From the IMG/VR virus record IMGVR_UViG_3300042261_002385, positions 248,001 to 312,000 of that record: a DNA stretch of 64,000 nt; one strand, written 5' to 3'. This document shows, piece after piece, positions 3 through 25,851 of this stretch. Numbering within the stretch: position 1 is the stretch's first letter; every line of letters begins with the position of its first letter. A program made the translations under genes and the position numbers. The notes beneath the pieces were generated by a model. The model did no database searches. It was given only the letters and a program-made list of their open reading frames with translations, and was not told the origin of the DNA.

Positions 3-1292
3 ACTTACTTACGACTGAATTCTCATAAATTATATGAACACGGACTTACAAAAGAAGACGTTCTTAAGATATGTCAAGAAAGATGGGGCTCAAAAACAAA
101 AATAGAAATTGGTTGGAATTCTGATTTACAGAAGGATATTTTGCATATTTTCAATAATGAAAATTGCTCTGATGAAGAGGTGAAAAGACTGACAATTGAA
201 GACAACAGAGGGTTTGAAGTTCCAATAAGAACATTAGCTGACGTTACGACTTGGAAAGAAGAAGCAATAAAAGATATTGGTGGAGAAGACGCTTTCAATC
301 AAGAGTATGGACTAAGATTTATCAATGCATCCAAATCACTTTTGAATGAAGCAATTATTGATGAACTACTCAAAAGTAAGAAAAACTATGTTTTTGAAGA
401 AATATCAGAATTTGATAAAAAGATTAAATTTAGTTACTCTGATTTAAAATTTGTCGATGATGATGAAATATTTATACCACTAAAAAGAAAAGAATACAAA
501 ATTGTTGTTTCTATTGATATTGCTGAAGGATTAGGACAGGATTATTCCGTTATTAATATTTTTAGAATAAGTAATAAACCTAAAGAGGTTATTGAAAGTC
601 AAAAAAATAACTACAAATCACTAGTTGACTTCTTTAGACTCGAACAAATAGGTATTTTCAGAAATAACATGATTTCAATTAAACAACTAGCTGAGATCCT
701 TTATTTAATTTGCTTTGAATATTTCAATCCAGAGAATGTCAAAGTTGTATTAGAGTTGAATAATTATGGAAATACTTTACTGGCTGAAATGCCACACGTA
801 TTTGACGGAAAAAACGACTATGGTTCATCCATCTTTGTAAGATACAAACACAGAGTAGATTCTACAGAAGAAAAAGTAGGTCTGAAAGTAGGAGAAAACA
901 AAAATCTTTTAGTAAAAGATTATCAAGATCTTATGTATTCTAGAGGATTTGCTATTAATAATGAAGACACAATTAGAGAAATAACAACCTTTGTGAAGCA
1001 TATTACTTCAGCCGGTAACACTAGATACGCAGCTGACGTCGGGCATGATGATTGTGTAATGACTATTGTGAATACAACTTCAATCTTTCAAAAAACAGAA
1101 TTTAAAGAGATGATTGATGAGTGGTCAAGCAAACACACAGATAAGGAAATGCTACAATTTATTAATCAGTGTATGAATAGTATTGATTTTGTAGAAGGTG
1201 TTGATTACGGTTCATTTTTAAGAGCAAAAAATTTAGCAAAACCTAAAACTGGAAAAACTGGCTTGGGAAATAATTGGTTTGGTATAGGTTAA
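3..1292 (+). CDS. terL: Terminase large subunit, C-terminal nuclease half (5'-truncated by the window edge)
   Basis: Frame is open from nt 3. It has WKEE..FNQEY, the RNase H-fold DIAEGLGQDYSV and the C-terminal GHDDCVM motifs of T4 gp17-like terminases. Confidence 0.9.
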   Translation, partial: TYLRLNSHKLYEHGLTKEDVLKICQERWGSKTKIEIGWNSDLQKDILHIFNNENCSDEEVKRLTIEDNRGFEVPIRTLADVTTWKEEAIKDIGGEDAFNQEYGLRFINASKSLLNEAIIDELLKSKKNYVFEEISEFDKKIKFSYSDLKFVDDDEIFIPLKRKEYKIVVSIDIAEGLGQDYSVINIFRISNKPKEVIESQKNNYKSLVDFFRLEQIGIFRNNMISIKQLAEILYLICFEYFNPENVKVVLELNNYGNTLLAEMPHVFDGKNDYGSSIFVRYKHRVDSTEEKVGLKVGENKNLLVKDYQDLMYSRGFAINNEDTIREITTFVKHITSAGNTRYAADVGHDDCVMTIVNTTSIFQKTEFKEMIDEWSSKHTDKEMLQFINQCMNSIDFVEGVDYGSFLRAKNLAKPKTGKTGLGNNWFGIG

Positions 1293-1573
1293 GAATTCTC
1301 TTCCATGGTAACTGACAGACCAGCATTCTGAAGTTTTTCCTTCATAGTAGAAATAGTCTCGAAATCACCATACTTGACGTCACATTTTCCTTTAAAGTGA
1401 ACAATATGTGCACACTGATTAGCTTGTTCATATTCATGCCCGCAAACTTTCATCAAACAAGAGATAACCCAGTCAAAGGAGTTGAAATCATCATTATGTA
1501 AATCCAATCTATAAGGTTTTGAAAGAATTTCTTTTGCTTTACTTTGTGTTTTCTTTTTTGTAATAGTCGCCAT
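1289..1573 (-). CDS. clpS: ATP-dependent Clp protease adaptor ClpS
   Basis: LHNDDFNSFDWVISCLMKVCGH..QANQCAHIVHFKGKCDVK is the ClpS core, in the Bacteroidota-like style. Confidence 0.9.
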   Translation of the reverse strand: MATITKKKTQSKAKEILSKPYRLDLHNDDFNSFDWVISCLMKVCGHEYEQANQCAHIVHFKGKCDVKYGDFETISTMKEKLQNAGLSVTMEENS

Positions 1574-1577
1574 ATAA

Positions 1578-1606
1578 CTTATATTTTATTTTAATTAGAA
1601 AGTTTT
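1578..1606 (-). promoter_or_regulatory. Class II promoter AAAACT-N17-TATAAG, 4 nt upstream of the clpS ATG
   Basis: Read directly from the sequence. The same architecture recurs before 8 other genes. Confidence 0.55.
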
Positions 1607-2110
1607 TAAAGTCTTGTTTACTACATCAACAACAGTTACGGCACAGGATTGATTTTTTGCCCACTCTTCGAAATGTGGAAGATGGTCTTTTCTATCATCA
1701 TACATAACAAAATGTCTACAACCTGTTTTAATTATCATTTTCTCAAATAATTGTGTTTTAAATTTAAAAGTATCTCCTCCCCAGTTTAGATAGATTTCAT
1801 CAAATTCAAATCCATAATTTTTGAGAATTTTAATTACACCATCTCTCATACCTGGAACTGTATCTAACCTACCAGTGGCCAATATCAAATAACCAGTGGG
1901 GTCAGATTTTGCATCAATATATTTTTTATAAGTCCATTCGTTTTTAGGAGTATCAAATATGTTCATATCTAAAGTTTCTACTTTAGACCACCAACCTCTG
2001 TAAGGCCAAGGTTTTCCAGTTTTTTCTTCCCAAATTTTCATACCTGGTTCAGGTAACATAGTGTGTATAAGTGTATCGTCAAAGTCAAAACAATATAGAG
2101 TTTGGTGCAT
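1595..2110 (-). CDS. HAD-superfamily phosphatase, Swiss-Army-Knife RNA-repair/PNKP-like
   Basis: DFDDTL (DxD), GWW, LATGR, FK and YDDR..H motifs match HAD motifs I-IV. Confidence 0.7.
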   Translation of the reverse strand: MHQTLYCFDFDDTLIHTMLPEPGMKIWEEKTGKPWPYRGWWSKVETLDMNIFDTPKNEWTYKKYIDAKSDPTGYLILATGRLDTVPGMRDGVIKILKNYGFEFDEIYLNWGGDTFKFKTQLFEKMIIKTGCRHFVMYDDRKDHLPHFEEWAKNQSCAVTVVDVVNKTLKTF

Positions 2111-2199
2111 TGCAAATTTTATTTTTACAAATATATATAAAAAAAATTAATGTTAATAAGATTTAAAAAATTATATATAATTAAAAATTACACAATAAA

Positions 2200-2616: not shown

Positions 2617-2619
2617 TAT

Positions 2620-3117: not shown

Positions 3118-3174
3118 TGAAAAAAGTCATTTTTTTAATATAATATATACTTTACAAAAAAATCATAATTGAAA

Positions 3175-3816: not shown

Positions 3817-3837
3817 AAATTACTACAGATATACTTC

Positions 3838-3865
3838 AAAACCCATCAGAAATGATGGGTTTTTT
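3838..3865 (+). terminator. Intrinsic terminator
   Basis: ACCCATCA-GAAA-TGATGGGT followed by a T-run. Confidence 0.85.
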
Positions 3866-3881
3866 ATTTAATATATAATTT

Positions 3882-9022: not shown

Positions 9023-10102
9023 CTAAACTGTTTCTTCTACAAGAACGGTGGTCAACATTCTATTAGAAACTAAATATGGATCACAATTGGAAGCTGGTCT
9101 TCTATCTTCAAAATAACCTCTACCATCAACTTGTGCTTGTGCTGGAATTCTAATAGAAGTATCTCGTGTGCTGTGACCATAGCTAAAATCATTAATTCCG
9201 GATGTTTCATGTGCACCGGTCAGTCTTTCTTCATTATGCAATCCATAGACTTCAATGTGTTGGATATGGTTGTTTTGTAATTTTTCCATAGATTTCATTA
9301 TTACATCAATACCACCAGATTGCCTCATATCTTTAGTTGAGAAATTTACGTGACAACCTGTGCCATTCCAATCACCTTTAATTGGCTTAGGATGTAAAGA
9401 TACATTCACATTGTGTCTTTCAGCGACTCTTCCTAAGATATATCTTGACATCCAAAGTTGGTCTGAACCATTTAGTGAAGTAACTGGACCAATTTGATAT
9501 TCCCATTGTCCCAATAATACTTCAGCATTTATACCTGAAATATCAAGTCCTATCTCAATACACTTATCCATGTGTTCTTCAACGATTTCACGTCCAATAA
9601 CTGTATCAGCTCCGATTCCACAATAATAGTCTCCTTGTGGACGAGGAACTATACCAGGTTCAAATCCTAGTGGTAAACCAATACCTTCACCAAAAGGTGT
9701 TAGTGGTTTGTGCGTAAGAGTATACTCTTGTTCCCAACCAAACCACGGAGAATCTGTCTTTGACAAACTATCAATTCCGAGTGATTTGACCGTCTCTTGT
9801 AGTTTTCTTCTGTTATTCGATTTGTGTGGTGTTCCATCTGGATTCAATACCTCACAAAGAACTAATTTATTAGGAATTCCTCTAAATGGATCATCACAAA
9901 CAAAGACAGGTTTCAGAAGACAATCTGTATTCTCGCCTTTACCTGCTTTAGCCTGTAAAGTTGAACTACCATCAAAAGACCACATTGAGTAATTTTCAAC
10001 ATTGTTATCTAATGAAGTCTCTTCAGAGACAATTTTTGTTTTACTTCTGAGTTGTTGGGGCTCAGACCCATCTAACCAAATATACTCTTGTTTAATTTTC
10101 AT
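9023..10102 (-). CDS. glnII: Glutamine synthetase type II
   Basis: EYIWLDG, LRSKT, WSFDGSST, EQEY, INAEV..GQWEYQ, HPKP..GDWNGTGCH, RLTGAHET and YFEDRRPASNCDPY. Confidence 0.95.
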   Translation of the reverse strand: MKIKQEYIWLDGSEPQQLRSKTKIVSEETSLDNNVENYSMWSFDGSSTLQAKAGKGENTDCLLKPVFVCDDPFRGIPNKLVLCEVLNPDGTPHKSNNRRKLQETVKSLGIDSLSKTDSPWFGWEQEYTLTHKPLTPFGEGIGLPLGFEPGIVPRPQGDYYCGIGADTVIGREIVEEHMDKCIEIGLDISGINAEVLLGQWEYQIGPVTSLNGSDQLWMSRYILGRVAERHNVNVSLHPKPIKGDWNGTGCHVNFSTKDMRQSGGIDVIMKSMEKLQNNHIQHIEVYGLHNEERLTGAHETSGINDFSYGHSTRDTSIRIPAQAQVDGRGYFEDRRPASNCDPYLVSNRMLTTVLVEETV

Positions 10103-10437: not shown

Positions 10438-10754
10438 TTCTAAAAATACTGTCGTTGTTTTTTTTACTAAACAATTTATACTACATCTTCAACTACAAAA
10501 GGTTAGACGAGCCTTTCAAAATGAGAGATGAGAATAAAAAATTAGATTTACTTCATTACATTCTTAAGGTTTTATATTTAGTATGGTTGTGTATACTAGT
10601 CTTTATACAACAATCTTTACTAATTTGGATACTAATCTCTATAATCACTTTAAGAATACCAATCTATTATACAAATAAACGGTCGTCAATTGTATATCAC
10701 AGATTAGTTCCAATACTAAACATTATTATTCTGATTCTTTATCTTTTTTCTTAA
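10434..10754 (+). CDS. Small polytopic membrane protein
   Basis: Three to four hydrophobic segments. ATGA overlap with the upstream gene. Confidence 0.55.
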   Translation: MILKILSLFFLLNNLYYIFNYKRLDEPFKMRDENKKLDLLHYILKVLYLVWLCILVFIQQSLLIWILISIITLRIPIYYTNKRSSIVYHRLVPILNIIILILYLFS

Positions 10755-11278
10755 AGATTGAATTTTTTTAGATGGTCTTCTGTTATGATTATAAACTCAT
10801 ATCCCTTTAAACTACACCAATTTATCATAGTTTCCCACTTTTGCTTATTCTTATAAGCCATTTTTAAATCATATTCAAAGTTTTTGAGTTTTTTTCCTTT
10901 ATTCTCAGGAACTGTTAGTCTTCCTTCATTCAAAGCCAGAACCATATTATACTCTTTCATAGGTTTGACTTCGACTACGACTTGTTTTAAAACACCAGAC
11001 TCTAATCTCATCTCATAATAGAAATCAGGATAGTAACAGTGCTCTTTAACTTTAGTATCACCTTTATCAAAGTGTGTCATTTGATAAGGTATTCTCATAC
11101 ACTCAGCTCCCCATCTAGATATCTTTTCGTTATGGTCTAACCAAGTCATTATTTTCTTTTCCCAAGAACTTCTAAAATAAACTCCGCCATTACTGTTCAG
11201 TTTTAGAACTTTATCTTTATTTTTCGGAATATAATTACCTTGATTATAATTGCTGTTATTTGGTTTAGAATTCAACAT
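10751..11278 (-). CDS. gp4: Head completion nuclease, gp4-like (TnsA-type PD-(D/E)xK)
   Basis: FRSSWE, W..E...IPY, YYPDF, VEVKP, NK.KW and FIIITEDHL motifs. Confidence 0.9.
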   Translation of the reverse strand: MLNSKPNNSNYNQGNYIPKNKDKVLKLNSNGGVYFRSSWEKKIMTWLDHNEKISRWGAECMRIPYQMTHFDKGDTKVKEHCYYPDFYYEMRLESGVLKQVVVEVKPMKEYNMVLALNEGRLTVPENKGKKLKNFEYDLKMAYKNKQKWETMINWCSLKGYEFIIITEDHLKKFNL

Positions 11279-12391: not shown

Positions 12392-12639
12392 TTTTTAAAT
12401 ATTTTATTAAGCTTATACTCTCTTCTATCTTCTACTGTAGTTGGTTCAATGAGAAACTCACCATCACAAATTTTTATATTCCATTTGTTGCCAGTAATAC
12501 TATCACGTATAACAAGTTTCTCAACTACAACAGAACCATCAGACTCTACAACAAGTGAATTAGAACCAGCCGCAGATACTTTAAATAGATCGTCATCTAC
12601 AGAATAGATTACTGAATTATTTTTATATTTTGATGCCAT
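12388..12639 (-). CDS. Hypothetical protein
   Basis: ORF in an operon. Ends RREYKLNKIFKK. Confidence 0.55.
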   Translation of the reverse strand: MASKYKNNSVIYSVDDDLFKVSAAGSNSLVVESDGSVVVEKLVIRDSITGNKWNIKICDGEFLIEPTTVEDRREYKLNKIFKK

Positions 12640-13567: not shown

Positions 13568-13573
13568 AGTATT

Positions 13574-14124: not shown

Positions 14125-14319
14125 ATAAATCTTCCAATCAGTGATGTGATAAACTCCTCTTTCATCTTGATAAACTTTATTATCATTTTCAAAGAAATCT
14201 GTTTTCAAAACATCATCAACTGTCTTATCAGAAGTTTCTGTCTCAAAATCTAATTCTGGTTCTAATATTTCTTGTTCATATTTGAAATCTTCATATAGCT
14301 TTATCCATTTCATAGTCAA
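14122..14319 (-). CDS. Small acidic protein with the KWIKLYEDF N-terminal tag
   Basis: 65 aa, carries the shared N-terminal motif. Confidence 0.6.
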   Translation of the reverse strand: MTMKWIKLYEDFKYEQEILEPELDFETETSDKTVDDVLKTDFFENDNKVYQDERGVYHITDWKIY

Positions 14320-14321
14320 TA

Positions 14322-15068
14322 TTAATTTTTAAGTATAGGAATTACAACTTCTTCTACAAATTGTTTCATATCTTCAACCGATATTGTATCTAAAGTGTCT
14401 TTTGGAGTATGACAGTTAAATAATAGTTTGAAATCTAAGTAGGTATTATCATCCCATTTGACAATTGATTCTTCTTTATTCTGAGTAGGAGGTAGTGGAT
14501 TTATAACAACCGAGTCTATACCATTTCTTCTGAAAGTAACGGAGTCGTTAAATGGTGTTTTAACAATTGGACAATCAAAAATAGATTTGATATGATTAGT
14601 TAGATTTCCAGGATAATCACCTATGAAAAAGTATTTTCCTCCTTTACCAGTAAGTTCTAAATTTAATACCCATTCGATATTTCCGAAAAATCCATCATTT
14701 ATCAATTCAGAACATCTTTGAGACCCTAAACCACCAACTTCTTCACCATCTAATAAAACAACTGTAATCTCAGGCATCAATTTTTTTATCATAATAGCAT
14801 TAATAACAGACGCTGAGTTATCATTTGCATTATCTATATCAGGATTCACGATATCATGATGAGCAACTACCATTCTACTTGAGTTACCACGTAAGACTAT
14901 ATTAAAACAATTTGATTTACCAGATTGAAATGTGTCTAATTTCCATTCTATTCCAATAGAGTCAAGTAAATTAGTAATGTATTGAACTCTTGGAGTAGGT
15001 TCTAAACCATTTTTATAAACATTACCGATATTTCTAATGGAGCAGAACTCATATATCTTATCATACAT
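14322..15068 (-). CDS. M28-family zinc peptidase
   Basis: AHHD, ANDNSAS, DGEE.G..GS, NLE and CHT..DT motifs. The real start is the ATG at 15068, because the longer ORF call overlaps the tmRNA. Confidence 0.85.
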   Translation of the reverse strand: MYDKIYEFCSIRNIGNVYKNGLEPTPRVQYITNLLDSIGIEWKLDTFQSGKSNCFNIVLRGNSSRMVVAHHDIVNPDIDNANDNSASVINAIMIKKLMPEITVVLLDGEEVGGLGSQRCSELINDGFFGNIEWVLNLELTGKGGKYFFIGDYPGNLTNHIKSIFDCPIVKTPFNDSVTFRRNGIDSVVINPLPPTQNKEESIVKWDDNTYLDFKLLFNCHTPKDTLDTISVEDMKQFVEEVVIPILKN

Positions 15069-15079: not shown

Positions 15080-15105
15080 AAAAAAACCCACTTAAAAAGT
15101 GGGTT
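15080..15105 (-). terminator. Intrinsic terminator after the tmRNA
   Basis: AACCCACT-TTTTA-AGTGGGTT followed by a T-run on the minus strand. Confidence 0.85.
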
Positions 15106-15113
15106 AATCTTTG

Positions 15114-15488
15114 TGGAGATGACGATGTACTGCCCATCGTGTCTTCCCTAGCTAACAATAATTATTCATTCACAGGCTTAGAAAGTTTCTCTAAACTTAC
15201 AAAGTAGTTAGTTGAACAACCCATCACTCTAACAATTCTGGTTTCACATTTTAAACTGTGTGATTCAGCTGGAGAATTTTTGCGATAAGCTTAAAAGATT
15301 AAACTACTGCTAGCTCTTCTACCTTAAGCATGTTGTTTTGTAGCGCCGCTACTAAATCTTCACGGGATGCTACTTCATTTGTTTTGCCATTTACGACTTT
15401 TGCCATCTAATTTATTAGTCGGTTACTTGACCATCCGACACCTGCATAATTACCACTACTCTATGAATCTATACTAAAAAACATCCCC
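15114..15488 (-). ncRNA. ssrA: tmRNA (one-piece, ~375 nt)
   Basis: GGGGAUG/CAUCUCC-A acceptor stem with G3.U70, T-arm ACGAUG-GGCAGUA-CAUCGU, P2 GCAGGU/GCCUGU with an AAGCCUGUGAA motif, and a tag frame UAAAU|GGC...UAA (15388-15299). CCA is not encoded. Confidence 0.9.
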
Positions 15489-15539
15489 ATAGTTTTATAA
15501 TTACAAATGTATATATAATATTTGAAAATATAAAAAAGT

Positions 15540-15806
15540 TTAGAAATTTTCAGAACCTTCTTCGAGTTCATACTCATCAGAATCTAAAGAATTTATAATA
15601 TTCTCAGCCTCTTCATAGGAATCATAATTAATCCAAAGAGAACCTTTACCAAATAATTCCTCAGCGTCAACCGCATCTTTATATGTTAAACCATCAGACA
15701 TCATTTTTGGTGTGAGAGCAAATATTCTAAAAGAATCACCAACTCTGTTTATAAAATATTTAACTTTATCGTTACTAAAATCTTCAAATAATTTAATGTA
15801 TTTCAT
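15540..15806 (-). CDS. Small protein with the MKYIKLFEDF N-terminal tag
   Basis: 88 aa, carries the shared N-terminal motif. Confidence 0.65.
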   Translation of the reverse strand: MKYIKLFEDFSNDKVKYFINRVGDSFRIFALTPKMMSDGLTYKDAVDAEELFGKGSLWINYDSYEEAENIINSLDSDEYELEEGSENF

Positions 15807-15820
15807 ATTAGTTCTTTTTT

Positions 15821-16402
15821 TTAGAAAGGCATGTTATCATCATCTAATCCTTCATCTAAAGTAAAACCAAAAGTAAGGATTCCTCTATTATCTTTTGACT
15901 GCCACATTTCAAATTCTGAATCATATTGAGCCAATATATCTCTTTTTAATTTGTTAGCGACTTCAAAAACTTTAATTACATTTCTAAGAGTTTCTTTTTT
16001 ACCCATGTAAACCTCTATTAAAATTTCATCATTTTTACGAGCGGTCACTCTTACATCTGAAACTCCAGCATTTCTAAACATCTGTCTTAAAAGATAAGTT
16101 AAATGTTCGATATCATCATCTTGTTCATCTTCATATATGTCATATTCATCGTCATCATCGTCATCATCAAATTTAGGATTTGAAGATTTTCTGCCATATT
16201 TGTTATTATCATCATCGTCATCATACCAATCATCAAAATCTCCATAATCTTTAGTAGAGTCATCAGCATAATCATAATCATCATCATCATCAGGCCATCT
16301 AGCTTCGTTTTTCTTATTAGCCGGTAAATTATCATTAAGATGACTTAAGTCATCTTTTCTAATATTTTCTTTAAGATAGTCTAAAAAATTATTTATGTTC
16401 AT
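15821..16402 (-). CDS. Acidic low-complexity protein with a small C-terminal alpha/beta domain
   Basis: Poly-Asp tracts in the N-terminal half. Confidence 0.6.
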   Translation of the reverse strand: MNINNFLDYLKENIRKDDLSHLNDNLPANKKNEARWPDDDDDYDYADDSTKDYGDFDDWYDDDDDNNKYGRKSSNPKFDDDDDDDEYDIYEDEQDDDIEHLTYLLRQMFRNAGVSDVRVTARKNDEILIEVYMGKKETLRNVIKVFEVANKLKRDILAQYDSEFEMWQSKDNRGILTFGFTLDEGLDDDNMPF

Positions 16403-17934
16403 TATCTCAATTCTATTTTTAAGTAAGTTTCACTAAAGAAACAATCATCCGCTATTTTATATTTTGCTAAGATTGTTTGAACTCTTATCAATGCATCATA
16501 TATTTCAGCCATATCAGACTCTTCTAAGTCTAAACTTACAAATATTCTATCGTCACTACCAACTACTTTAACATCTATACCAAAAACATTTTTCTTAACT
16601 TCATTAATTAGTTCTTTGTGTTTTGCAAACAACTCTTGATTGTATCCGACTTTTCTTTTGACTGGAAGATTATTCCAATCAACTTTTATAGAAGCTTCGG
16701 CTAATTTTTTCAAATAAGTTATATTCTGCATTTCAGTTCCTCTATGTTCATTATAATATCCAACAGATATGTTCGTGCACTCAGCTATATCTTCCATTAG
16801 AGATGCTGAATCAGTATAAACTCCAGTCGTATCTAAAGAAAGATTTAAACCATTTTTGTTATATTCATCACAAAGAGCTTGTGCAAAATCATTTGAACAA
16901 CATTGTCTACCTAATTGGTGAGTAATAACTGACGTGGTTCTTCTTCTATCAAAAGAAACACAATATTTAACATCTGTCAAATAGTCACATTTATCATATA
17001 CAGATGAAAGTGCATTTGAACCAATTCCTCCTCTTTCTTCTCCAATGAAGAAGTAGTAGATACCAGGAACATTGTTAGCCATCATATAAAGCATTACTGT
17101 AGTTCCAGCTTTATCATCGGCTCCAAGTATACTTGAACCATCTGTATAAATTATTTCATCACCTGAACCAGTCTTGATTAGTCTAAATGAATATCCCTCT
17201 TCCTCAACCCTTCCATTTGCTTGAAATAAACGAGTTGTTTTTTGTTCTCTGTCTGCAGTGTCTAAGTGACAAGTAAACATTACCTTTTGTTTATCATTAC
17301 CAATAATCTTATAATAATTACCGACTCTATCTTGTTTTAAATCAGGTAAGAATTTAAGCACTTCTTTTTCATGTCTACAATCAGAAAAATGTGGGTAAGT
17401 TTTAGTAGTAAGTGAAAGAAAAGTTGCTTTAACATCCTTCGGATTGTAACTAAATTCAGGAACAACTATTCTTTGAGCGGACGTGGTATCTTCTTCACCA
17501 ATATTATCAGCTACGATTGCGTTATATTGATGGATAAATGATTTAATCTCATCTTCTGTTAGTAGACCGGGCCAGTAATATCTAAAAAATTTACCAATCT
17601 TCATATCATACTTTTTATCAGCTATTTTCACTTCAAAACAGTATGGTTTTTTTGAAATAGTGACATCACTAATTCCCAATCCATTAAAATATTTAGAACC
17701 CTCTTCTCCTAACCAAAGCATTTCAAAGGCAAGATAGTTGTCATTATCTTCCATATTTTTTAATACTTTACAGAGGTCTTTTGATAATTTTATTTTGATA
17801 CCAGTATCTTTTGTAGATGACTTTGTGTCAAAAATTTCTTCTTTTGATTTATAACCACCACCTGTGTAATTACGTTCACCTGGGAAAGATTGAGTTCCAG
17901 CTTCAAATAGTTGATTATATTTAAATAATTCCAT
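16402..17934 (-). CDS. Zinc peptidase (M28/M20/M42 clan) with an unknown N-terminal domain
   Basis: CHLDT, LGADDKAG, GEERGGIGS, SFDRR, YTDS, NISVGYYNEH..E motifs. Confidence 0.85.
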   Translation of the reverse strand: MELFKYNQLFEAGTQSFPGERNYTGGGYKSKEEIFDTKSSTKDTGIKIKLSKDLCKVLKNMEDNDNYLAFEMLWLGEEGSKYFNGLGISDVTISKKPYCFEVKIADKKYDMKIGKFFRYYWPGLLTEDEIKSFIHQYNAIVADNIGEEDTTSAQRIVVPEFSYNPKDVKATFLSLTTKTYPHFSDCRHEKEVLKFLPDLKQDRVGNYYKIIGNDKQKVMFTCHLDTADREQKTTRLFQANGRVEEEGYSFRLIKTGSGDEIIYTDGSSILGADDKAGTTVMLYMMANNVPGIYYFFIGEERGGIGSNALSSVYDKCDYLTDVKYCVSFDRRRTTSVITHQLGRQCCSNDFAQALCDEYNKNGLNLSLDTTGVYTDSASLMEDIAECTNISVGYYNEHRGTEMQNITYLKKLAEASIKVDWNNLPVKRKVGYNQELFAKHKELINEVKKNVFGIDVKVVGSDDRIFVSLDLEESDMAEIYDALIRVQTILAKYKIADDCFFSETYLKIELR

Positions 17935-17950
17935 AGAGTATATATTAAAT

Positions 17951-18520
17951 TTAAATATGTATTATATTTCTATCTTTATTCTCTATGAATGCTCTACCCA
18001 CGGTCGGTTGATGAGATTCAATAAAAGCATCTTCTTCTTTGGTTCTATAACTTTTATTTTTTAGTTCTTTTATTTTATTTTCAACTTCGATTGGTGGATT
18101 AATACTCACCCTATCTTTGTAACACCAAACTATCTCAGCGAAATTGTTATCTTTGGCTTTGCTGTTCTTTTTAGCAATCTCTGCTGCTTTTTTTAGAATG
18201 TGGTCTGGAATAATATCATCTTTAATTGCTTTAACTAAAACGTGACTTCCCGGATATCCGGATGCATGTAACCAAATGTCCTGAACACTCGAAGCAACTC
18301 CTCCGATAGATTTAGCATATTTACCACAAAAATTACTAGTCAAAAAATGATTTGACTCTTTATTTCTACCCCAGTAAACATCATATGAATTATCAAGATT
18401 CAAATCGTCTATGATTTTTTTATGTTTTATATCAACACCACTCTTACTGAACTCTTTTAATTGACTGTTTATGAGATTTTCTTTTAATACAAAATCACTG
18501 TAATTTCTAGTTATCTTCAT
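17951..18520 (-). CDS. Stand-alone NFACT-R (RqcH/Rqc2 C-terminal RNA-binding) domain protein
   Basis: YWGRNKESNHFLT, DIWLHASGYPGSHVLVK and AAEIAKKNSKAK match RqcH VGKNN.QN..LT, DIWLH.K.IPGSHV and AA..AA..SKAK. Start is the ATG at 18520. Confidence 0.85.
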   Translation of the reverse strand: MKITRNYSDFVLKENLINSQLKEFSKSGVDIKHKKIIDDLNLDNSYDVYWGRNKESNHFLTSNFCGKYAKSIGGVASSVQDIWLHASGYPGSHVLVKAIKDDIIPDHILKKAAEIAKKNSKAKDNNFAEIVWCYKDRVSINPPIEVENKIKELKNKSYRTKEEDAFIESHQPTVGRAFIENKDRNIIHI

Positions 18521-18592: not shown

Positions 18593-19321
18593 TTAACTCA
18601 AATTGAATACAAAACTTTCAAGTTGACCGAAGTTAGTAGCACTAACAGGAACAGTAATAGTCGTTACACCACCAGACCAAGTTCCACTATAATATGCAGT
18701 TGAATGTGTCCAAGCATTTGAAGGTGTGCCTGAACCTGAAGGTAGAATCTTTGCAATTTGGTTATTGTAGTAAGCTCCAGTTGAAGCGGGTGCTTGTATA
18801 ATAAGTGAATTACCACTTGTTGTTGCTGTAGCTCCAGTAGGTAATGCAACAATGTTAGCCGCTAAAGTAGCAACGGCAGTTTCTGCACTTTGAGTAGCTG
18901 AAAAAGTATATCCAAATGGTCCAAAAATATTCCAGTTTGATGCTGTTACAGAACCAGTACCGTGTGATCCCCAGACTTGTATTTTGACGTTTGTTGCGTG
19001 AGCTAGAAGAGCTCCTGAACCTCCTGTAGCTGTTCCACCGAATGTAAAAGTAGCGGTCGCTGGTGAAAAAGTAGGTGCTACACCATTCGCTCCAGTAAGG
19101 TTATTAGATGATGTTCCATTAACATTCGCTGAAAATGTAAAATTACCACTATCTTCAGTTAAAAATCGTCCATCTGTCAAAGATATAGTTCTAGATTCCG
19201 TGAATCCAGCAACTGTAAGAGATGTTTCACCTCTTAGTCTCAAAGCTGTAACATCAAAAGTGATGACATCAGTTGTGCTGTTATAACTAGCAGAGTTAAT
19301 GTTTATGTAAGGTCTTGACAT
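18593..19321 (-). CDS. Ser/Thr/Gly-rich beta protein downstream of the capsid gene, candidate decoration protein
   Basis: Structural-protein composition, its own late-type promoter, and its position next to the capsid gene. Confidence 0.45.
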   Translation of the reverse strand: MSRPYININSASYNSTTDVITFDVTALRLRGETSLTVAGFTESRTISLTDGRFLTEDSGNFTFSANVNGTSSNNLTGANGVAPTFSPATATFTFGGTATGGSGALLAHATNVKIQVWGSHGTGSVTASNWNIFGPFGYTFSATQSAETAVATLAANIVALPTGATATTSGNSLIIQAPASTGAYYNNQIAKILPSGSGTPSNAWTHSTAYYSGTWSGGVTTITVPVSATNFGQLESFVFNLS

Positions 19322-19435: not shown

Positions 19436-21208
19436 TTAGTTCAAGTATTGATTACCATCAACAACTTTAATAGTCATAAATTGTTTTTGTGGATACCAAC
19501 CAACTTCAGTTACTGCATATCTAGATCTTAGTAACATTCTTGGTGCGAATGTTGCCTCAGAAATGATAGAGATTGATTGAGCCATCAAATAAGGAACGAA
19601 AATGATACCTGGTTGGTCAGGATTGTTCTTTCTACCAAGAACGATTCTGTTATCGTTATATCTCATATATGGGTCAACATAGATAGAAATATCACCGATA
19701 GAACCTACTGGGTAAAGTTGACCAGAAGCATTCATTTTAGCTTTAACTGGATTAATAGTATAACCAGAGATATCAGAAAGAGCTGCAGCAAGACCCCCGT
19801 TTGTGATAAGGTATTGAGCTGGACCTACACGACCTTCAGTAGCGATGTAGTTAGAAGCGTGAGCAATCTTAGTGATAAGTTTTCTTTGAACAGCGTGAGT
19901 TGTCTCACCACCGATACCACCACCTGCAGTTACATATGATGTATCTAAGTCAAAGATTGTTGGACTAGTAACTCCTGTGTAAGCAGCAGGACCAGAGTAA
20001 AGTGGAGCTGTAGTTCTGTTCAAATCACCCAATTCAAAGATTTTAGCAACGATTTGCTTAGAAATTGTTTGAGATAATTCGTTAACAAGAATTGATTCCA
20101 TTTTTTGAACGATATCCATACCTGTGTTAGCTTTGATATCTTCGATTTCAGTTCTTCTAAGAGCTGAAGATACTTCAATAGTACCTACTGCTACTGACTT
20201 AGAAGAAATTTTAGGACCGATAACTCCAGCATAACTGTTATCATCTGTGTCTCTATCCATTGGATAGTTACCATTGAAACCATCACCACCTTGAGTCCAG
20301 TTTGCAGAGAAACCAGGGATGTGATCTTCAAGAGCTGAAATCAACTCAATTGAAGCGAATCCACTGTTAATTGTAATTCCAGCTACACTTGTGATTTGAG
20401 AAATCATTGATTGTGTAGGGTTGAATGAGTTTCTATTTTGGTCAAAACTCCACATCGCAAGTGTTCCTGTAGTAGAAGTGTAAGGATTTGTTCCTGTATG
20501 AGCAGTGTTAGCTTGTCTGTAAGCTTTGAACATAGGGAAACCATCGATACGAGAGAAACCTAAGAACTCAACAATACCTTGTTTAGAAGCTGTTCCATTC
20601 AATGTAGTTGAAATAGTTGAACCTAAGTTATTTTGTCCTGTAGTTCCTAATGAGAAAAAGAATTGTCCATTTTGTAAACCACCAGAAGACTGAAGGATAG
20701 TAGCTCCGTTTCCAGTTTGCATAGCAGTTGCTAACGTAGATGATGTAGCACCAGCGTTTAATTTAAATACTTGTGGTCTTTCATCAGCGTCACCAGATTT
20801 AGTGTCGTCATAACGGAAATCTACATAAAGTAAATCGATTTTCGGACCTGGAGATGGCTTAACAGCAACAAGGTCAAGTCCGATAGTTTGAGCTGCGATT
20901 TTCATTGCAACTGGTAATAAGTTTTGACCAACATCACCAGAACCAGCAACACCACCTGAACCATATGAGAATGATGTAGCAGAGTTACCGTAAGGTGAAG
21001 TTTGACCAGCAAGTGTAGATGGTTGTGGAGATACAACACTACCCATACCTGATACGTTAGAAGCGTTAACGTAAGCGTTCTCGTTGATTGAGTGGAATTC
21101 AGCATATTCAGCCATCCATTCCATTCTATCACCAGTAACACCCATGTTTTCCAAAACTGGAGACCACTTCTTAATAGCTTTTGATTTGTCTATTCTAATG
21201 TGTGACAT
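19436..21208 (-). CDS. gp23: Major capsid protein, T4 gp23-like
   Basis: KKWSPVLE, AAQTIGLDLVAVKP, EDIKANTGMD, ELSQTISKQI, VGSIG..YVDPY and FVPY..PRMLLRSRY motifs. Confidence 0.95.
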   Translation of the reverse strand: MSHIRIDKSKAIKKWSPVLENMGVTGDRMEWMAEYAEFHSINENAYVNASNVSGMGSVVSPQPSTLAGQTSPYGNSATSFSYGSGGVAGSGDVGQNLLPVAMKIAAQTIGLDLVAVKPSPGPKIDLLYVDFRYDDTKSGDADERPQVFKLNAGATSSTLATAMQTGNGATILQSSGGLQNGQFFFSLGTTGQNNLGSTISTTLNGTASKQGIVEFLGFSRIDGFPMFKAYRQANTAHTGTNPYTSTTGTLAMWSFDQNRNSFNPTQSMISQITSVAGITINSGFASIELISALEDHIPGFSANWTQGGDGFNGNYPMDRDTDDNSYAGVIGPKISSKSVAVGTIEVSSALRRTEIEDIKANTGMDIVQKMESILVNELSQTISKQIVAKIFELGDLNRTTAPLYSGPAAYTGVTSPTIFDLDTSYVTAGGGIGGETTHAVQRKLITKIAHASNYIATEGRVGPAQYLITNGGLAAALSDISGYTINPVKAKMNASGQLYPVGSIGDISIYVDPYMRYNDNRIVLGRKNNPDQPGIIFVPYLMAQSISIISEATFAPRMLLRSRYAVTEVGWYPQKQFMTIKVVDGNQYLN

Positions 21209-21287: not shown

Positions 21288-23387
21288 TTAAATGTTTTTG
21301 AATCTTTCTAAAATTGCTTGAGCTTCTTTATCAGAAAGTTTATCCTCTTGGATAAGAGCTTCGTGAGAAACTAATTTTTTAGTAACAGATTCATTCTTTT
21401 TGAGATTTCTAGTCAACCAGAAATGCTCAACTTGTGATTCAGTCTTCAATACATCTTCTGGATAAAGTCTAGCTTGTGACAAGATAGATTTTTTAGAAGT
21501 GTCGTTCAACTGTTCCCAGATTGGCTTAACGTTTTCAGGCATCAATCTGATTACTCTTTCTTCAAGAGATTCATTCTTTGTAGACAGTGCTTCAGCAATC
21601 AATGTAAGAACTTCCTTCTGTGTAAAATAACTTCTTTCGTTTATGTGAAGTTTAACAGTTTCTTGTTCATCGTTAGATAATGCATAAAAGCTATCAACTT
21701 GTGACTTGTTTAAGAATTTTAAGAAATTCAAGTCAGTTGTTTCAGAAACTTTACGTTTTTTAGCTTCTTCAATTAATTTATTAATAGACTCAGATAATTC
21801 AGAATCATCGTGACCATGAACCTCATGAGATTCGTGTCCATATTTTTCTTCGTTGTCATCATCATTGTTTTCGTGAGAATAAGCTTCTTCGTCATGTGAA
21901 GCAGGAACTCCGTGATAATTTTCTTCATTATCATCATCGTTGTTGTGATTCTCTTCTTCGTGATTTTCAAAACCATAAGCTGATAGCGAAGCGAAAGCCT
22001 CTTCATCATGGTTTTCAAATAATTTACCACCTTTAGAATTTAATTTTTCAACAATCATTCCTTGATAAGAAATTGATCTATCAAGATTTTCAGCGATATA
22101 CTCAGAGTAGGCGATGTTATCATCTAAATGCTCCGCGATATACTCAGAGTAAGCGATGTTACCTTCAACATGCTCAGCTAAGTATTCAGAATACGCGATA
22201 GAGTTATCAACGTGCTCAGCTAAGTATTCAGAGTAAGCGATGTTTTTATCAAGATTCTCAGCAATATACTCAGAGTAAGCGATGTTTTTATCAAGATTCT
22301 CAGCAATATACTCAGAGTAAGCGATGTTCTTATCAAGGTTTTCTGCTAAGTATTCTGAGTAAGAAATGTTTTTGTCTAAGTTTTCAGCGATATACTCAGA
22401 ATAAGAGATATTCTTATCTAAGTTTTCAGCTAGATACTCAGAATATTCAATATTCTTATCTAAATTTTCAGCAACATACTCAGTATAGTTAATTGCTTTT
22501 TCAAGATTTTCTGCTAAATAGTCATTATGTTTAGCAAGTTTTTCAGTTGTGTTTCTAAGAGATTTGTTCTCATTAACAACAACTTGGATTTTTTCAGCTA
22601 AGTAGTCAAGATATTTAACTACTTGTGAATTAGTTGAGTTCAATTCTTCGTAGTATTCAAGTAATTGCTCTAATTTCTTAGGAGCCATATTACCTTTAGA
22701 AATTGCACTCTTAACTTCTTTTTTAGTTGAAGCAATCTCGTTTACTAAATACTTTGAATAATCAGTCAACTGTTTCTTAGTAACAAAGTCGTTTCTGTTC
22801 ATGTTGAATAATTCATTTATTTTTGACTCGTCGGACATTTCATATATCCTAAAGTTAGATTTTGGGTTTGTATAACCTAAAGACTCATTAAGTGTTTTTA
22901 CTGACATTTTTGCTGAAGCAAAACCTGGATCAGCTACAATGTCATATGTGAATAATTTTTTCAATGAAACAGATCCGTCAGATTCAGTGATACCAGCCGC
23001 TCTAGAAGAAACGAATACCGGACAACCATCATCAACTAATGCTTTCGCTTCTTTACCCCAATAAGTGCTAAGAAGTCTAATTTCACCAGCAACAATGTTT
23101 TGTTCTTTAAGATAGTTTGCTTTAGTGATAATGTGTGATGCTCTTGCTAAAGAAGTGTCAAAAACATCTGGGTGATCAAACTCACCATAAACAGCTCCTA
23201 AACTGTTCATTCTTTCATTCAACTCATCCAACGCTGGTAAGAATCTGTCTGCTGTATAGATACGTTCATTACGGTTTTTCACTCCAAATTCAGTGAAAGT
23301 TCCACCTAAAACGTAATCTTTTTTACCAGATGCATTTTCTCGTATTAGAGCATTCGTTGAATTTTCTACGATTAATACTGATTTCAT
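21288..23387 (-). CDS. gp21: Prohead protease (gp21-like) fused to a scaffold/core protein
   Basis: KNRNERIY, GEFDHP, SHII, VSSRAAG and TYDIVADPGF in the N-terminal ~170 aa, followed by a long coiled-coil region. Confidence 0.92.
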   Translation of the reverse strand: MKSVLIVENSTNALIRENASGKKDYVLGGTFTEFGVKNRNERIYTADRFLPALDELNERMNSLGAVYGEFDHPDVFDTSLARASHIITKANYLKEQNIVAGEIRLLSTYWGKEAKALVDDGCPVFVSSRAAGITESDGSVSLKKLFTYDIVADPGFASAKMSVKTLNESLGYTNPKSNFRIYEMSDESKINELFNMNRNDFVTKKQLTDYSKYLVNEIASTKKEVKSAISKGNMAPKKLEQLLEYYEELNSTNSQVVKYLDYLAEKIQVVVNENKSLRNTTEKLAKHNDYLAENLEKAINYTEYVAENLDKNIEYSEYLAENLDKNISYSEYIAENLDKNISYSEYLAENLDKNIAYSEYIAENLDKNIAYSEYIAENLDKNIAYSEYLAEHVDNSIAYSEYLAEHVEGNIAYSEYIAEHLDDNIAYSEYIAENLDRSISYQGMIVEKLNSKGGKLFENHDEEAFASLSAYGFENHEEENHNNDDDNEENYHGVPASHDEEAYSHENNDDDNEEKYGHESHEVHGHDDSELSESINKLIEEAKKRKVSETTDLNFLKFLNKSQVDSFYALSNDEQETVKLHINERSYFTQKEVLTLIAEALSTKNESLEERVIRLMPENVKPIWEQLNDTSKKSILSQARLYPEDVLKTESQVEHFWLTRNLKKNESVTKKLVSHEALIQEDKLSDKEAQAILERFKNI
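22065..22526 (-). repeat. Eleven tandem 42-bp (14-aa) repeats of the type SEY(I/L)AENLDKNIAY
   Basis: 462 bp = 11 x 42, read from the protein and the DNA. Confidence 0.92.
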
Positions 23388-23435
23388 TCAAAAATAATTA
23401 TTTTTTACCTTTTACAGTTGGATTATATATTACAT

Positions 23436-23469
23436 AAAAAACCACCTAATTTACAAAGGTGGATTTTTT
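23436..23469. terminator. Hairpin terminator upstream of the protease promoter
   Basis: CCACCT-N9-AGGTGG flanked by A- and T-runs. Confidence 0.7.
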
Positions 23470-23564
23470 ATAGTCGATTAAAACCTTTATCAATAATAAG
23501 TCATGTAGAATTAAGAGGAAGAGCTGGTTTTTTAATAAATAACCTAAAAAATAAGTGGTTTTTT

Positions 23565-23966
23565 ATGATTCTCACTAGAGAAATATCTATCAAAATAACA
23601 GAGTCCAATATGCAATACTATGAGGACTTAGGATATGACGTTTCAATTGGTGAAAATTTATTAATTCCAGTCGAACTAATGTCAAGAGGGTCTCATTACA
23701 AAATAAAATGTAAGTGTGATAGTTGTTCAATTGAGAAAGATGTGATTTTTAAAAATTATGTAAAATACGACAATGACTGGGGACAATACTACTGTAGAAA
23801 ATGTTCTGAGAAGAAAAGAAAGGATACTCTTCAGAGAAATTACGGAGTAGACTATCCTATTCAGAATAAAAAAGTTATGTCTAAAATGAAAAAAACACTT
23901 ATGAAAAAATATGGAGTAGACAATATCTCTAAGAGAGATATTAAACAAAACAATTCTCCTGAATAA
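23565..23966 (+). CDS. Zinc-ribbon/YGV-repeat protein resembling a homing-endonuclease DNA-binding N-terminus without a nuclease domain
   Basis: CxCDxC...CxxC plus T..(K/N)YGV repeats. Likely start is the ATG at 23565. Confidence 0.5.
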   Translation: MILTREISIKITESNMQYYEDLGYDVSIGENLLIPVELMSRGSHYKIKCKCDSCSIEKDVIFKNYVKYDNDWGQYYCRKCSEKKRKDTLQRNYGVDYPIQNKKVMSKMKKTLMKKYGVDNISKRDIKQNNSPE

Positions 23967-23973
23967 AATTCCT

Positions 23974-25851
23974 ATGATACAAATATTAGAAGGAGAAAGA
24001 CACATCGGTCAGATTGATTTCTCCACAAATGGCCACGCGACTATCGTGGTTGGTGAAAAAAATCTTTTCATACATAAAAAGAATACTTTGAACGCATTAC
24101 ACTTAGATAAAGTAAAAATTGAAATATTTAAAGCAGAAAAAAAATTAGAAGCAAAAGTAATTGAAGTTATTTCAAGATTCAGAACAGAATTTGTTGGTAG
24201 AGTTCAAGTTGGAAAAAAGTCCACTTTTGTTATACCTGATAGTAACAAAATATCAGTAGACTTTTATATAAAAGGTGGATTAGTTGCCAATGATGGTCAA
24301 AAAGTTTTAGTTGAACTTACAAAATGGGAAGATTCAAAATCCCCTCAAGGTAAAATAAATAAAATTCTTGGTGATTCAGGTGAAAACGAAACAGAAATGA
24401 ACTCAATAATGTATGAGTATAATTTACCTGTTGAGTTTCCACAAGAAGTAATTAATGAATCCGAATTAATATCAGAAGTAATAACTGAAAAAGAAATCCA
24501 GAAAAGAAAAGATTTAAGAGATATAGTGACACTTACTATAGACCCAGTAGACGCTAGAGATTTTGATGATGCTCTTTCAATAAAATTAATTAACGAAAAT
24601 AAGATAGAAGTAGGCGTTCATATAGCAGATGTAAGTCACTACGTAAAAATCGGAACTAAACTAGATGACGAAGCTCTTAAAAGAGCAACATCAGTATATC
24701 TTGTTGATAGATGTGTCCCAATGTTACCAGAAAGATTAAGTAACGGAATATGCTCACTTAAACCAAATGAGGACAGATTAGCATTTTCTGTAATTTTTAC
24801 GTTAGATAAAGATGGTAGAGTCATAGAAGAATGGCATGGAAAAACAATTATTCATTCTAATAGAAGATTCACGTATGAAGAAGCTCAAGAAATAATTGAA
24901 GGTTCTGAAGGTGAATACAAAAGTGAAATTCTAACACTAAATCAGTTAGCTAAAAAAATAAGAAAAAAGAGAATAGGTGAAGGTTCAATAGAAATGGGTG
25001 GCATCGAAGTCCGTTTCAAATTAGCAGAGGATAATAAAAAACCAATCGGAGTCTACTTCAAGGAACAAAAAGAATCAAATAAACTTATTGAAGAGTTTAT
25101 GTTACTAGCTAACAAATCCGTGGCTAAACTACTCTCTAAAAATCAATGGCACAATGTATATAGAGTTCATGATACTCCAAACTACGATAAACTTCAACAA
25201 TTAGTGAATGTTTGTAATAACTTCGGATACAATGTAGAAGTAGAAGGTGAACCTGAAGACATTAAAAAGTCTCTTAATCAACTACTAAGAGACATCAAAG
25301 AAACTCCAGAAGAAAATATGATTCAAACATTAGTAACAAGATGTATGGCAAAAGCGACATATACAATTAACAATATAGGTCATTATGGACTTGGGTTCAC
25401 ACATTACTCTCATTTCACTAGTCCAATAAGGAGATACCCCGATTTAATCACACACAGGATTCTTTTTGATTTTCTAAACAAGGGAAAACAAGGTAATCCA
25501 ATAAAAATCGAAAAACAATCTAAATGGTGTTCTTCAAGAGAATTAATTGCAGCAAAAGCTCAAAGAGATTCTATTAAATATAAGCAAGCTGAATATCTGA
25601 TTGATAAAATCGGCCAAGTTTTTGATGGTGTAATTTCAGGAGTGACAGACTGGGGTATCTATGTTGAACTCTTAGAATCAAAGTGTGAAGGTATGATTAG
25701 ATTCAATTCTATCGGTAAGGTAAAAGTAGATTTAGAACAGTTTTTGGTGACTGATGAATTAGGTAACAAATTAAGACTTGGAGATTCAATAAAAATAGTT
25801 GTAAACTCAGTCGATTTAGAGAAAAAACAAATTGACTTTATTCCGTTCTAA
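23974..25851 (+). CDS. rnr: Ribonuclease R
   Basis: Cold-shock domains, RNB motifs TIDP.DARDFDDA, VHIADV, LIEEFMLLAN, GHYGL..YSHFTSPIRRYPD and an S1 domain. It lacks the N-terminal HTH. Confidence 0.96.
   Translation: MIQILEGERHIGQIDFSTNGHATIVVGEKNLFIHKKNTLNALHLDKVKIEIFKAEKKLEAKVIEVISRFRTEFVGRVQVGKKSTFVIPDSNKISVDFYIKGGLVANDGQKVLVELTKWEDSKSPQGKINKILGDSGENETEMNSIMYEYNLPVEFPQEVINESELISEVITEKEIQKRKDLRDIVTLTIDPVDARDFDDALSIKLINENKIEVGVHIADVSHYVKIGTKLDDEALKRATSVYLVDRCVPMLPERLSNGICSLKPNEDRLAFSVIFTLDKDGRVIEEWHGKTIIHSNRRFTYEEAQEIIEGSEGEYKSEILTLNQLAKKIRKKRIGEGSIEMGGIEVRFKLAEDNKKPIGVYFKEQKESNKLIEEFMLLANKSVAKLLSKNQWHNVYRVHDTPNYDKLQQLVNVCNNFGYNVEVEGEPEDIKKSLNQLLRDIKETPEENMIQTLVTRCMAKATYTINNIGHYGLGFTHYSHFTSPIRRYPDLITHRILFDFLNKGKQGNPIKIEKQSKWCSSRELIAAKAQRDSIKYKQAEYLIDKIGQVFDGVISGVTDWGIYVELLESKCEGMIRFNSIGKVKVDLEQFLVTDELGNKLRLGDSIKIVVNSVDLEKKQIDFIPF

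Follow-up and report, generated by a model that had tools for sequence, protein, structure and literature searches.

Does a large phage that carries a gene for transfer-messenger RNA (tmRNA) close to its head genes also bring the partners needed to rescue stalled ribosomes, and do those partners form one unit? The question is raised by a stretch of 64,000 nucleotides (the window), bases 248001-312000 of the IMG/VR virus record IMGVR_UViG_3300042261_002385, a phage record of 436,265 bp with 31% GC and 28 tRNA genes that is called G000 here; coordinates prefixed with G000 are those of the whole phage record and all other positions are those of the window. An earlier interpretation made from the letters of the window (the sequence-only reading) had listed a tmRNA, a stand-alone NFACT-R domain, RNase R, ClpS, two zinc peptidases and a HAD phosphatase, interleaved with head genes, and had proposed that together they control stalled ribosomes, for example against mRNA- or tRNA-cleaving defence toxins. 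The tmRNA proves to be a genuine RNA gene that stands alone and is expressed, and there is good support for a trans-translation system encoded by the phage; this support does not extend to one integrated kit for rescue, quality control and counter-defence.

The gene for the tmRNA and its signals are as follows:

15111-15488, minus strand: one-piece tmRNA gene, G1 at 15488, recognised by covariation, tag frame and RNA sequencing
15299-15388, minus strand: tag reading frame of the tmRNA, with the resume codon GGC (15388-15386) after GUAAAU and the stop codon UAA (15301-15299)
15504-15511, minus strand: promoter-like element TACATTTG, 15 nt upstream of G1 and within a conserved TATATATACATTTGTA block
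15085-15105, minus strand: intrinsic terminator belonging to the tmRNA gene, AACCCACUUUUUAAGUGGGUU with a U-run after it

ARAGORN (default, relaxed and whole-genome runs) has no match to the tmRNA of the window, and Rfam reports no tmRNA there at the gathering threshold, nor at E<=10 over 28 kb or over a 481-nt slice. The gene was located through synteny with a 249-kb relative (G004), in which a full-length match to the Rfam tmRNA model RF00023 lies ~5 kb downstream of the capsid gene, at the place of the 'gap' 15159-15539 of the window; with 32.8 bits this match is the best in a family that does not reach the gathering threshold of 47 bits. The homologous stretch was recovered by nhmmer in 69 of 83 loci, among them LR745206 and LR756502 (635 kb and 642 kb, both deposited as 'uncultured phage'), the nearest deposited genomes at the DNA level, and ARAGORN finds no tmRNA in seven relatives that include these published genomes. 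The failure of both tools is explained by a non-canonical T-loop and a divergent D-loop analogue.

In its architecture, the RNA resembles the bacterial one-piece tmRNA (ssrA, RF00023), with a 7-bp acceptor stem, a G3.U70 wobble, a discriminator A, a T-arm, a long P2 helix, a PK1 pseudoknot immediately 5' of the resume codon, further pseudoknots and a start-less tag frame with a hydrophobic end. The acceptor stem pairs GGGGAUG (15488-15482) with CAUCUCC (15121-15115) and is followed by the discriminator A15114 and then CAA; the T-arm (~15139-15122) reads ACGAUG-GGCAGUA-CAUCGU. Unlike bacterial tmRNA, the phage RNA has the T-loop GGCAGUA instead of UUCRANU and, in most family members, a divergent D-loop analogue; its tag is 27-30 residues long and ends in V/A rather than LAA, CCA is not encoded, its RF00023 score stays below gathering, ARAGORN is blind to it and it is encoded by a virus near head genes.

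The structure rests on a comparative analysis of an alignment of 42 sequences (A2), from which RNAalifold, given no prior information, recovered the acceptor stem, the T-arm, the long P2 helix and the PK1 hairpin, with compensatory double changes in 29 of 49 pairs. Extended by the other stem of PK1, by one more H-type pseudoknot and by a 3' hairpin, the model has 66 pairs that are 94.6% canonical, compared with a maximum of 85.2% in 500 column shuffles and with 35-47% when the 3' partners are slid; compensatory changes are seen in 44 of these pairs. G.U forms the third pair of the acceptor stem in 41 of the 42 sequences, and acceptor pairs 5 and 6 covary. The T-stem covaries strongly (up to 30 double changes per pair) around a T-loop that is itself conserved, the 24 pairs of P2 are 96% paired (15 of them compensatory), and PK1, which precedes the resume site, is 100% paired in its stem S1 and 92% paired in S2, where all four pairs are compensatory.

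The tag of the window reads (A)GKTNEVASREDLVAALQNNMLKVEELAVV, a predicted peptide that contains EVASREDLVAALQNN. Its frame is open in 42 of 42 relatives over 27-30 codons and starts with GGC after a conserved GUAAA(U/C), and the encoded peptides share the core EVGTREDLVAAL and a C-terminal V/A. An in-frame ATG lies just upstream of the tag in the window; since the relatives in A2 do not conserve it, ordinary initiation at this frame is argued against.

The promoter-like element corresponds to TAnnTTTG, the Bacteroides -7 promoter consensus (PMC4747536), which is found within 45 nt upstream of G1 in 27 of the 42 relatives, against ~3% expected from the genome background. At the other end, a terminator hairpin occupies the same place in every relative with a differing sequence. 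Expression was read from three independent freshwater metatranscriptomes, whose contigs cover only ~15118-15456 (~340-375 nt) with word depths of 16/12, 226/550 and 10/108 in the two main bins, and in which the depth over the flanks 14300-14983 and 15497-18500 is ~0; a DNA-like library, serving as control, is flat over the whole 5.1 kb. In one run, a 340-nt contig is identical to 15118-15456. The tmRNA is by far the most abundant signal of the region in the metatranscriptomes examined and is expressed as a discrete, abundant RNA, at the resolution of contigs, which do not define its exact ends or strand.

An RF00023 match elsewhere in the phage, of 190 nt at G000:68801-68990 in a tRNA array near the SmpB gene, was rejected as a tmRNA; it consists of a terminator and a local tRNA-like element. 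This element of 83 nt (G000:68795-68877, minus strand) follows the intrinsic terminator in the array and is the source of the spurious 18-bit tmRNA match; it has an 8-bp acceptor stem, a canonical T-arm (GUGGG-UUCGAAU-CCCAC), a possible UAU anticodon loop and no clear D-arm, and it is called neither by ARAGORN nor by the Rfam tRNA model.

The phage is a freshwater megaphage related to the 635-642 kb 'Mahaphage' genomes of Lac Pavin, and the window is part of a conserved backbone. LR745206 and LR756502 originate from the work of Al-Shayeb et al. 2020 on huge phages, which assigns genomes of more than 634 kb to the 'Mahaphage' clade, with Bacteroidetes as their predicted hosts (PMC7162821). At least 220 contigs of IMG/VR encode a capsid protein 67-90% identical to that of the phage. 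Gene counts within the family refer to 80 relatives, taken as loci of the major capsid protein (MCP); whole records were scanned in 15 large relatives, the near-complete genomes being G000, G001, LR745206 and LR756502, and rarity across phages was counted in 50,697 deposited phage records. The host is probably a member of the Bacteroidota, as suggested by the published host prediction for the clade, by the Bacteroidota affinity of the RNase R and by the TAnnTTTG promoter motif.

A tmRNA is expected to act with SmpB and RNase R, and both are encoded by the phage:

G000:79293-79718: SmpB, 175 bits, C-terminal DKR...KER tail kept, 184 kb from the tmRNA
23974-25851, plus strand: RNase R, 625 amino acids, domains CSD1-CSD2-RNB-S1, 8.5 kb from the tmRNA

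The phage SmpB resembles bacterial SmpB in keeping the C-terminal DKR...KER tail; its neighbours (G000:79968-83375 and 77793-81218) are a thioredoxin, a truncated-looking ClpP paralogue of 188 amino acids and a sigma-70-family factor. The RNase R passes the NCBIfam equivalog TIGR02063 (649.1 bits, cut-off 597.85), with all four domains recognised by Pfam; the N-terminal 68 model positions are missing, and so is the N-terminal domain of ~75 amino acids found in its closest bacterial homologues, which are proteins of 703-712 amino acids from metagenome-assembled genomes of Bacteroidales, Bacteroidetes and Balneolaceae with 42-47% identity. The phage protein stops three residues past S1 and lacks a Lys-rich C-terminal tail. 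In Escherichia coli, it is this Lys-rich tail that couples RNase R to ribosomes rescued by tmRNA. The missing tail was considered as evidence against coupling to the tmRNA and rejected as such; the closest Bacteroidota homologues are also without the tail, which makes its absence a trait of the lineage. RNase R is present at 64 of the 80 MCP loci and in 12 of the 15 large relatives; among the deposited phage records, genuine phage RNase R is essentially limited to megaphages that carry ClpS or NFACT-R. A DUF7487/homing-endonuclease-like open reading frame (ORF; 23418-23966, plus strand) is wedged between the prohead protease gene and that of RNase R.

On the proteolytic side, the phage genome encodes three ClpP paralogues, one ClpC-like ATPase and an adaptor:

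1289-1573, minus strand: ClpS adaptor homologue, 94 amino acids, Pfam PF02617 at 65.3 bits (cut-off 23)

The ClpS homologue does not reach the NCBIfam equivalog cut-offs (39.9 against 107). Aligned to E. coli ClpS (equivalents of N34, D35, D36 and H66), it keeps the NDD and VH motifs, and two Met positions of the pocket are Phe and Ala. It thus shares with the ClpS of the ClpA/ClpC N-degron pathway the fold family and the NDD and His pocket residues, and differs from known ClpS in its shorter length, in these two substitutions, in the lack of a phage Clp_N domain and in that the likely host phylum may lack ClpS. Its homologues are found at 150 viral loci with 76-100% identity, and just three of the deposited phage records have a ClpS. 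The ClpC-like ATPase (710 amino acids) has a double AAA+ module, a UVR motif, a D2-small domain and a GVGF loop; its N-terminus is of low complexity and the AAA+ module starts at about residue 68, without an N-domain. No Clp_N domain was detected in the whole phage genome, and this ATPase was rejected on that ground as a partner for ClpS; ClpS has no phage-encoded docking site and would require a host partner. A control genome, that of Bacteroides thetaiotaomicron, contains SmpB, RNB, ClpP, Clp_N and NFACT-N, and ClpS was not found in it; judging from this single control, the phage may bring ClpS into a host that has none.

Are these genes one kit or a scattered repertoire? Each of the four near-complete genomes has the tmRNA, SmpB, RNase R and ClpS despite rearrangements (gene order differs in LR745206 and LR756502, and RNase R has moved in LR756502); ClpP too is present and retained. 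All four genes are also found in LR756504, a distant megaphage whose proteins are 33-40% identical, where a canonical tmRNA (280507-280863, minus strand; 65 bits in Rfam, missed by ARAGORN), SmpB, RNase R and ClpS are spread over 340 kb; NFACT-R was not detected in that genome. SmpB occurs in Lak phages and in a 735-kb phage that have neither RNase R nor ClpS. Within the family, synteny was examined as a test of linkage and rejected: unrelated neighbours (clamp loader, GlnII, Dam, NADAR and anonymous ORFs) are interleaved with the genes of the proposed kit and as conserved as they are, so that synteny reflects the conserved backbone. The kit genes themselves lie on both strands in separate transcription units, and SmpB, ClpP and the ClpC-like ATPase are 60-230 kb away. 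The triad of tmRNA, SmpB and RNase R, together with ClpS, behaves as a repertoire co-retained in two lineages and not as a cluster or cassette.

Every component that the sequence-only reading had named is indeed there. Its tmRNA is borne out by covariation, by the tag frame open in 42 of 42 sequences and by RNA sequencing; ClpS, RNase R, the NFACT-R domain, both zinc peptidases and the HAD phosphatase are all present by profile scores or motifs; the interleaving with head genes holds, as the gp23-type capsid and prohead protease genes lie between; and SmpB, which it had placed outside the window, was found where listed above. It had pointed to smpB and to ArfB or Pth as genes to look for elsewhere in the genome: SmpB turned up, and ArfB (RF-1 domain) and Pth are absent. 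The functional linkage it had drawn holds in part. A survey of co-occurrence finds tmRNA, SmpB, RNase R and ClpS recurring together in the four near-complete relatives and LR756504, always dispersed, whereas the M28 peptidase is found in one of 80 relatives and the HAD-ClpS pairing is lost in LR756504. The idea of one physical kit fails on the two strands, the separate units, the partners 60-230 kb off and the dispersal in LR756504.

The remaining members of the proposed kit, and the head genes among which they stand, are these:

14322-15068, minus strand: M28 zinc peptidase, 248 amino acids, Pfam 38.1 bits (cut-off 21.3), HHD and DGEE motifs
16402-17934, minus strand: MH-clan (M20/M28/M42-like) zinc peptidase, 510 amino acids, phrog_4191 'peptidase' at 222 bits
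17951-18520, minus strand: stand-alone NFACT-R protein, 189 amino acids from its true start M10, with a family-specific helical insertion
19436-21208, minus strand: T4-type (gp23) major capsid protein, in 80 of 80 relatives
21288-23387, minus strand: prohead protease/scaffold fusion, in 80 of 80 relatives
1595-2110, minus strand: HAD phosphatase (HAD_SAK_1 / T4 Pnk-phosphatase-like), 31.6 bits (cut-off 25.6), DxDxT motif FDFDDTL

The NFACT-R protein scores 32.9 bits in Pfam (cut-off 29.8) and matches RqcH in the PDB at E 3e-4, with no PHROG match. Its AlphaFold model (pLDDT 87.7) retrieves with Foldseek CCDC25 as the best hit (E 2.5e-8), followed by RqcH, Rqc2 and NEMF on ribosomes. CCDC25 binds DNA, and the association of the phage protein with ribosomes is uncertain for this reason. 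The family is well conserved (alignment A1), lies directly downstream of the MCP gene in 71 of the 80 relatives and is found in just two of the deposited phage records; a profile search returned thousands of NFACT-R proteins, some of them full-length RqcH and many of them stand-alone (108-240 amino acids), with four close relatives only. The protein shares with RqcH/Rqc2/NEMF and with CCDC25/Jlp2 the motif D-I-W-L-H...P-G-S-H-V and the fold; unlike RqcH, whose NFACT-R domain lies near the A-site finger (PMC8012679), it has no NFACT-N, HhH or coiled-coil-M domain and is closer to the stand-alone CCDC25/DUF814 class, to which it adds its phage-family-specific helical insertion. Neither NFACT-N nor the HhH and coiled-coil domains were detected anywhere in the phage genome. 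Without NFACT-N, recruitment of tRNA-Ala is impossible, so the protein cannot be an Ala-tailing enzyme of the RqcH type and the second rescue route of the sequence-only reading falls away. An S/T/G/A-rich ORF between the capsid and NFACT-R genes (18593-19321, minus strand), present in only five of the 80 relatives, may encode a head-internal or decoration protein, as may a hyper-acidic poly-Asp ORF further along (15821-16402, minus strand). The prohead protein itself has 699 amino acids and joins a prohead protease-like N-terminus (weak S77 match) to a long coiled coil, which resembles a protease-scaffold fusion.

The M28 peptidase, being found in one of 80 relatives, is a variable accessory gene. 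A TTG start at 15158 was rejected since it lies inside the tmRNA gene and upstream of its terminator; the ATG at 15068 is just past the terminator. The 510-residue peptidase matches Pfam M28, PepT and NCBIfam models weakly; its HxD, GADDKAG and GEE motifs align to the tripeptidase 3rza, it carries an N-terminal extension of ~200 amino acids and it is present in 74 of 80 relatives. The HAD gene lies upstream of ClpS, also on the minus strand and at a distance of 22 nt, an adjacency kept at 79 of 80 loci and absent from LR756504; a conserved functional pair of the two thus holds within the close family only. No RNA ligase or kinase gene lies beside the HAD gene, and searches of the phage genome also found no RtcB and no CCA-adding enzyme of the PolyA_pol type. 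A marginal match to the RNA-ligase family (G000:161466-161936, minus strand; 27.4 bits against 27), by a lone tRNA-Cys gene and 87 kb away, is a possible partner of the HAD protein in RNA repair. Nothing demonstrates a link between trans-translation and NFACT-R, the peptidases or the HAD phosphatase, which are neighbours of a conserved or variable kind.

Other genes of the window include a GlnII-type glutamine synthetase homologue (9023-10102, minus strand; 414 bits, equivalog cut-off 500) that is conserved in relatives, a TnsA-like endonuclease ORF (10751-11278, minus strand) and a NADAR domain protein (12623-14092, minus strand) adjoining a Dam-type N6-adenine methyltransferase, both kept in 56-60 of 80 relatives. 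Among the tRNA genes of the phage, two matches to the tRNA-Sec model at G000 ~74518-74693 (minus strand), one at the gathering score (47.1 bits) and one at 41.3 bits, are not called by ARAGORN and are probably tRNAs with long variable arms, not tRNA-Sec. ARAGORN also reports 'tRNA-???' genes with four-base anticodons (agta, tcta) at G000:37118-37204 (minus strand) and at 2039-2114 (minus strand) of slice L186 of LR756504, which could be frameshift-suppressor-like or intron-bearing tRNAs.

How would these parts work together? The tmRNA-SmpB complex recruits RNase R, and tagged proteins are degraded by ClpXP, ClpAP or Lon (PMC8012679). For the phage, we consider the following mechanism, taken as a whole, to be reasonably likely. 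The divergent tmRNA would be transcribed from its own Bacteroidota-type promoter and end at a terminator of its own; the leader at the 5' end and the trailer at the 3' end would presumably be trimmed, CCA presumably added by host enzymes and the RNA presumably charged with Ala by the host alanyl-tRNA synthetase via G3.U70. The phage SmpB would then deliver it to ribosomes stalled on truncated mRNAs, where translation would resume at the GGC after GUAAAU, a tag of 29 residues ending in LAVV would be appended, and the released non-stop mRNA would be degraded by the phage RNase R. The tagged products would probably go to Clp proteolysis by the three phage ClpP and the N-domain-less ClpC-like ATPase with its VGF-type loop. 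The phage ClpS most likely reprograms host ClpC/ClpA, as its N-degron pocket core is intact and the phage encodes no docking domain.

Several observations weigh against this mechanism. The Rfam tmRNA model stays below threshold and the T-loop GGCAGUA is not the canonical UUCRANU, so that charging and entry into the ribosome are predictions; the tag is of unusual length, has a V/A end instead of the LAA recognised by ClpX, and may be no degron; the components are spread over more than 350 kb and never form an operon; the tmRNA occurs with SmpB undetected in two large relatives, ~90% complete by CheckV, whose estimates are unreliable for megaphages; and expression was read from assembler contigs and their word depth, which carry no information on strand, ends or stage of infection. 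A reading in which the tmRNA-like stretch is a relic without function (for example a captured fragment of ssrA or the remnant of an attachment site) or else a small protein-coding gene would agree with the missing ARAGORN and Rfam calls and with the in-frame ATG upstream of the tag in the window copy; it is extremely improbable in the face of compensatory changes in 44 of 66 pairs, a near-invariant G3.U70, a frame open in 42 of 42 sequences, a conserved promoter and terminator, a very abundant RNA and an ATG that relatives do not conserve. A less drastic alternative would have tmRNA and SmpB cooperate and the other genes serve separate ends, RNase R in the bulk turnover of host RNA and in nucleotide salvage, ClpS and ClpP in remodelling the proteome of the host, and NFACT-R and the peptidases in head maturation or as virion cargo, with proximity due to the backbone only. 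The separate transcription units on both strands, the tmRNA's own promoter and terminator, the location of the NFACT-R and 510-residue peptidase genes directly downstream of the MCP gene, in the same orientation and surrounded by acidic head-type ORFs, the possession of SmpB and neither RNase R nor ClpS by the Lak phages and the 735-kb phage, and the rearranged position of RNase R in LR756502 all fit such independence. It is nonetheless rather unlikely: RNase R is precisely the nuclease recruited by tmRNA-SmpB (PMC8012679), and two divergent megaphage lineages combine it with tmRNA and SmpB, although it is otherwise very rare in genuine phage genomes.

The opposite view, in which all seven components make up one coordinated kit (trans-translation, RqcH-like Ala-tailing, N-degron delivery, peptidases and RNA repair) against mRNA- or tRNA-cleaving toxins, can point to the existence of every component, to the conservation of most of them across the family, to a ClpS and an NFACT-R almost unique to the clade among phages, and to the 28 tRNAs of the genome and its putative RNA ligase, in keeping with an investment in the upkeep of translation. 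We judge it improbable, as Ala-tailing is impossible for an NFACT-R protein alone in a genome without NFACT-N, HhH and coiled-coil domains, the M28 peptidase is in one of 80 relatives, LR756504 has no HAD-ClpS pairing and no detected NFACT-R, the interleaved clamp loader, GlnII, Dam and NADAR genes are equally conserved, and ArfB, Pth and RtcB are absent. We likewise doubt a bolder extension of the trans-translation mechanism, in which SmpB and the tmRNA, with its divergent tRNA-like domain and non-canonical T-loop, would be a private, partly orthogonal pair, the phage-specific tag of 29 residues would be read by the phage's own N-domain-less ClpC-like ATPase and ClpP, ClpS, entering a host phylum that may lack it, would retarget or block host ClpC, and NFACT-R, produced along with the head proteins, would act on the split 50S subunit; if true, the virus would replace, and not merely supplement, ribosome rescue and degradation by the host.

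The trans-translation mechanism outlined above can be set beside what has been reported. The presence of tmRNA and SmpB in huge phages generally, mostly as items of ARAGORN annotation, is already known (PMC7162821), and, like the huge phages of that study and the Lak phages, megaphages of the same broad clade encode both among many translation genes. LR745206 and LR756502, published by Al-Shayeb et al., carry homologues of everything described for the phage. That study assigned tmRNAs with ARAGORN (PMC7162821), which finds no tmRNA in the loci described here, and the family was thus probably overlooked. The combination of tmRNA and SmpB with RNase R, ClpS and NFACT-R and evidence of expression are not described in the available portion of the article (PMC7162821). 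What is new is a divergent tmRNA family that is invisible to the usual tool, abundantly expressed and equipped with a long conserved tag, a complete triad with RNase R, and a ClpS and a stand-alone NFACT-R that are nearly exclusive to the clade.

Invisible to ARAGORN and below threshold in Rfam, this megaphage tmRNA family comprises at least 69 loci, including those of the published 635-642 kb genomes; surveys thus undercount viral ribosome-rescue genes, and as the tmRNA of LR756504, significant in Rfam, is missed too, those that rely on ARAGORN only undercount the tmRNAs of megaphages. The tag sequence is directly searchable in lake metaproteomes. ClpS and NFACT-R are specific candidates for proteins by which a virus manipulates proteolysis and ribosome quality control in its host. 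The phage probably rescues stalled ribosomes itself, and its tmRNA, with an unusual T-loop and a tag that is long and conserved, offers handles on what a virus gains from a trans-translation of its own.

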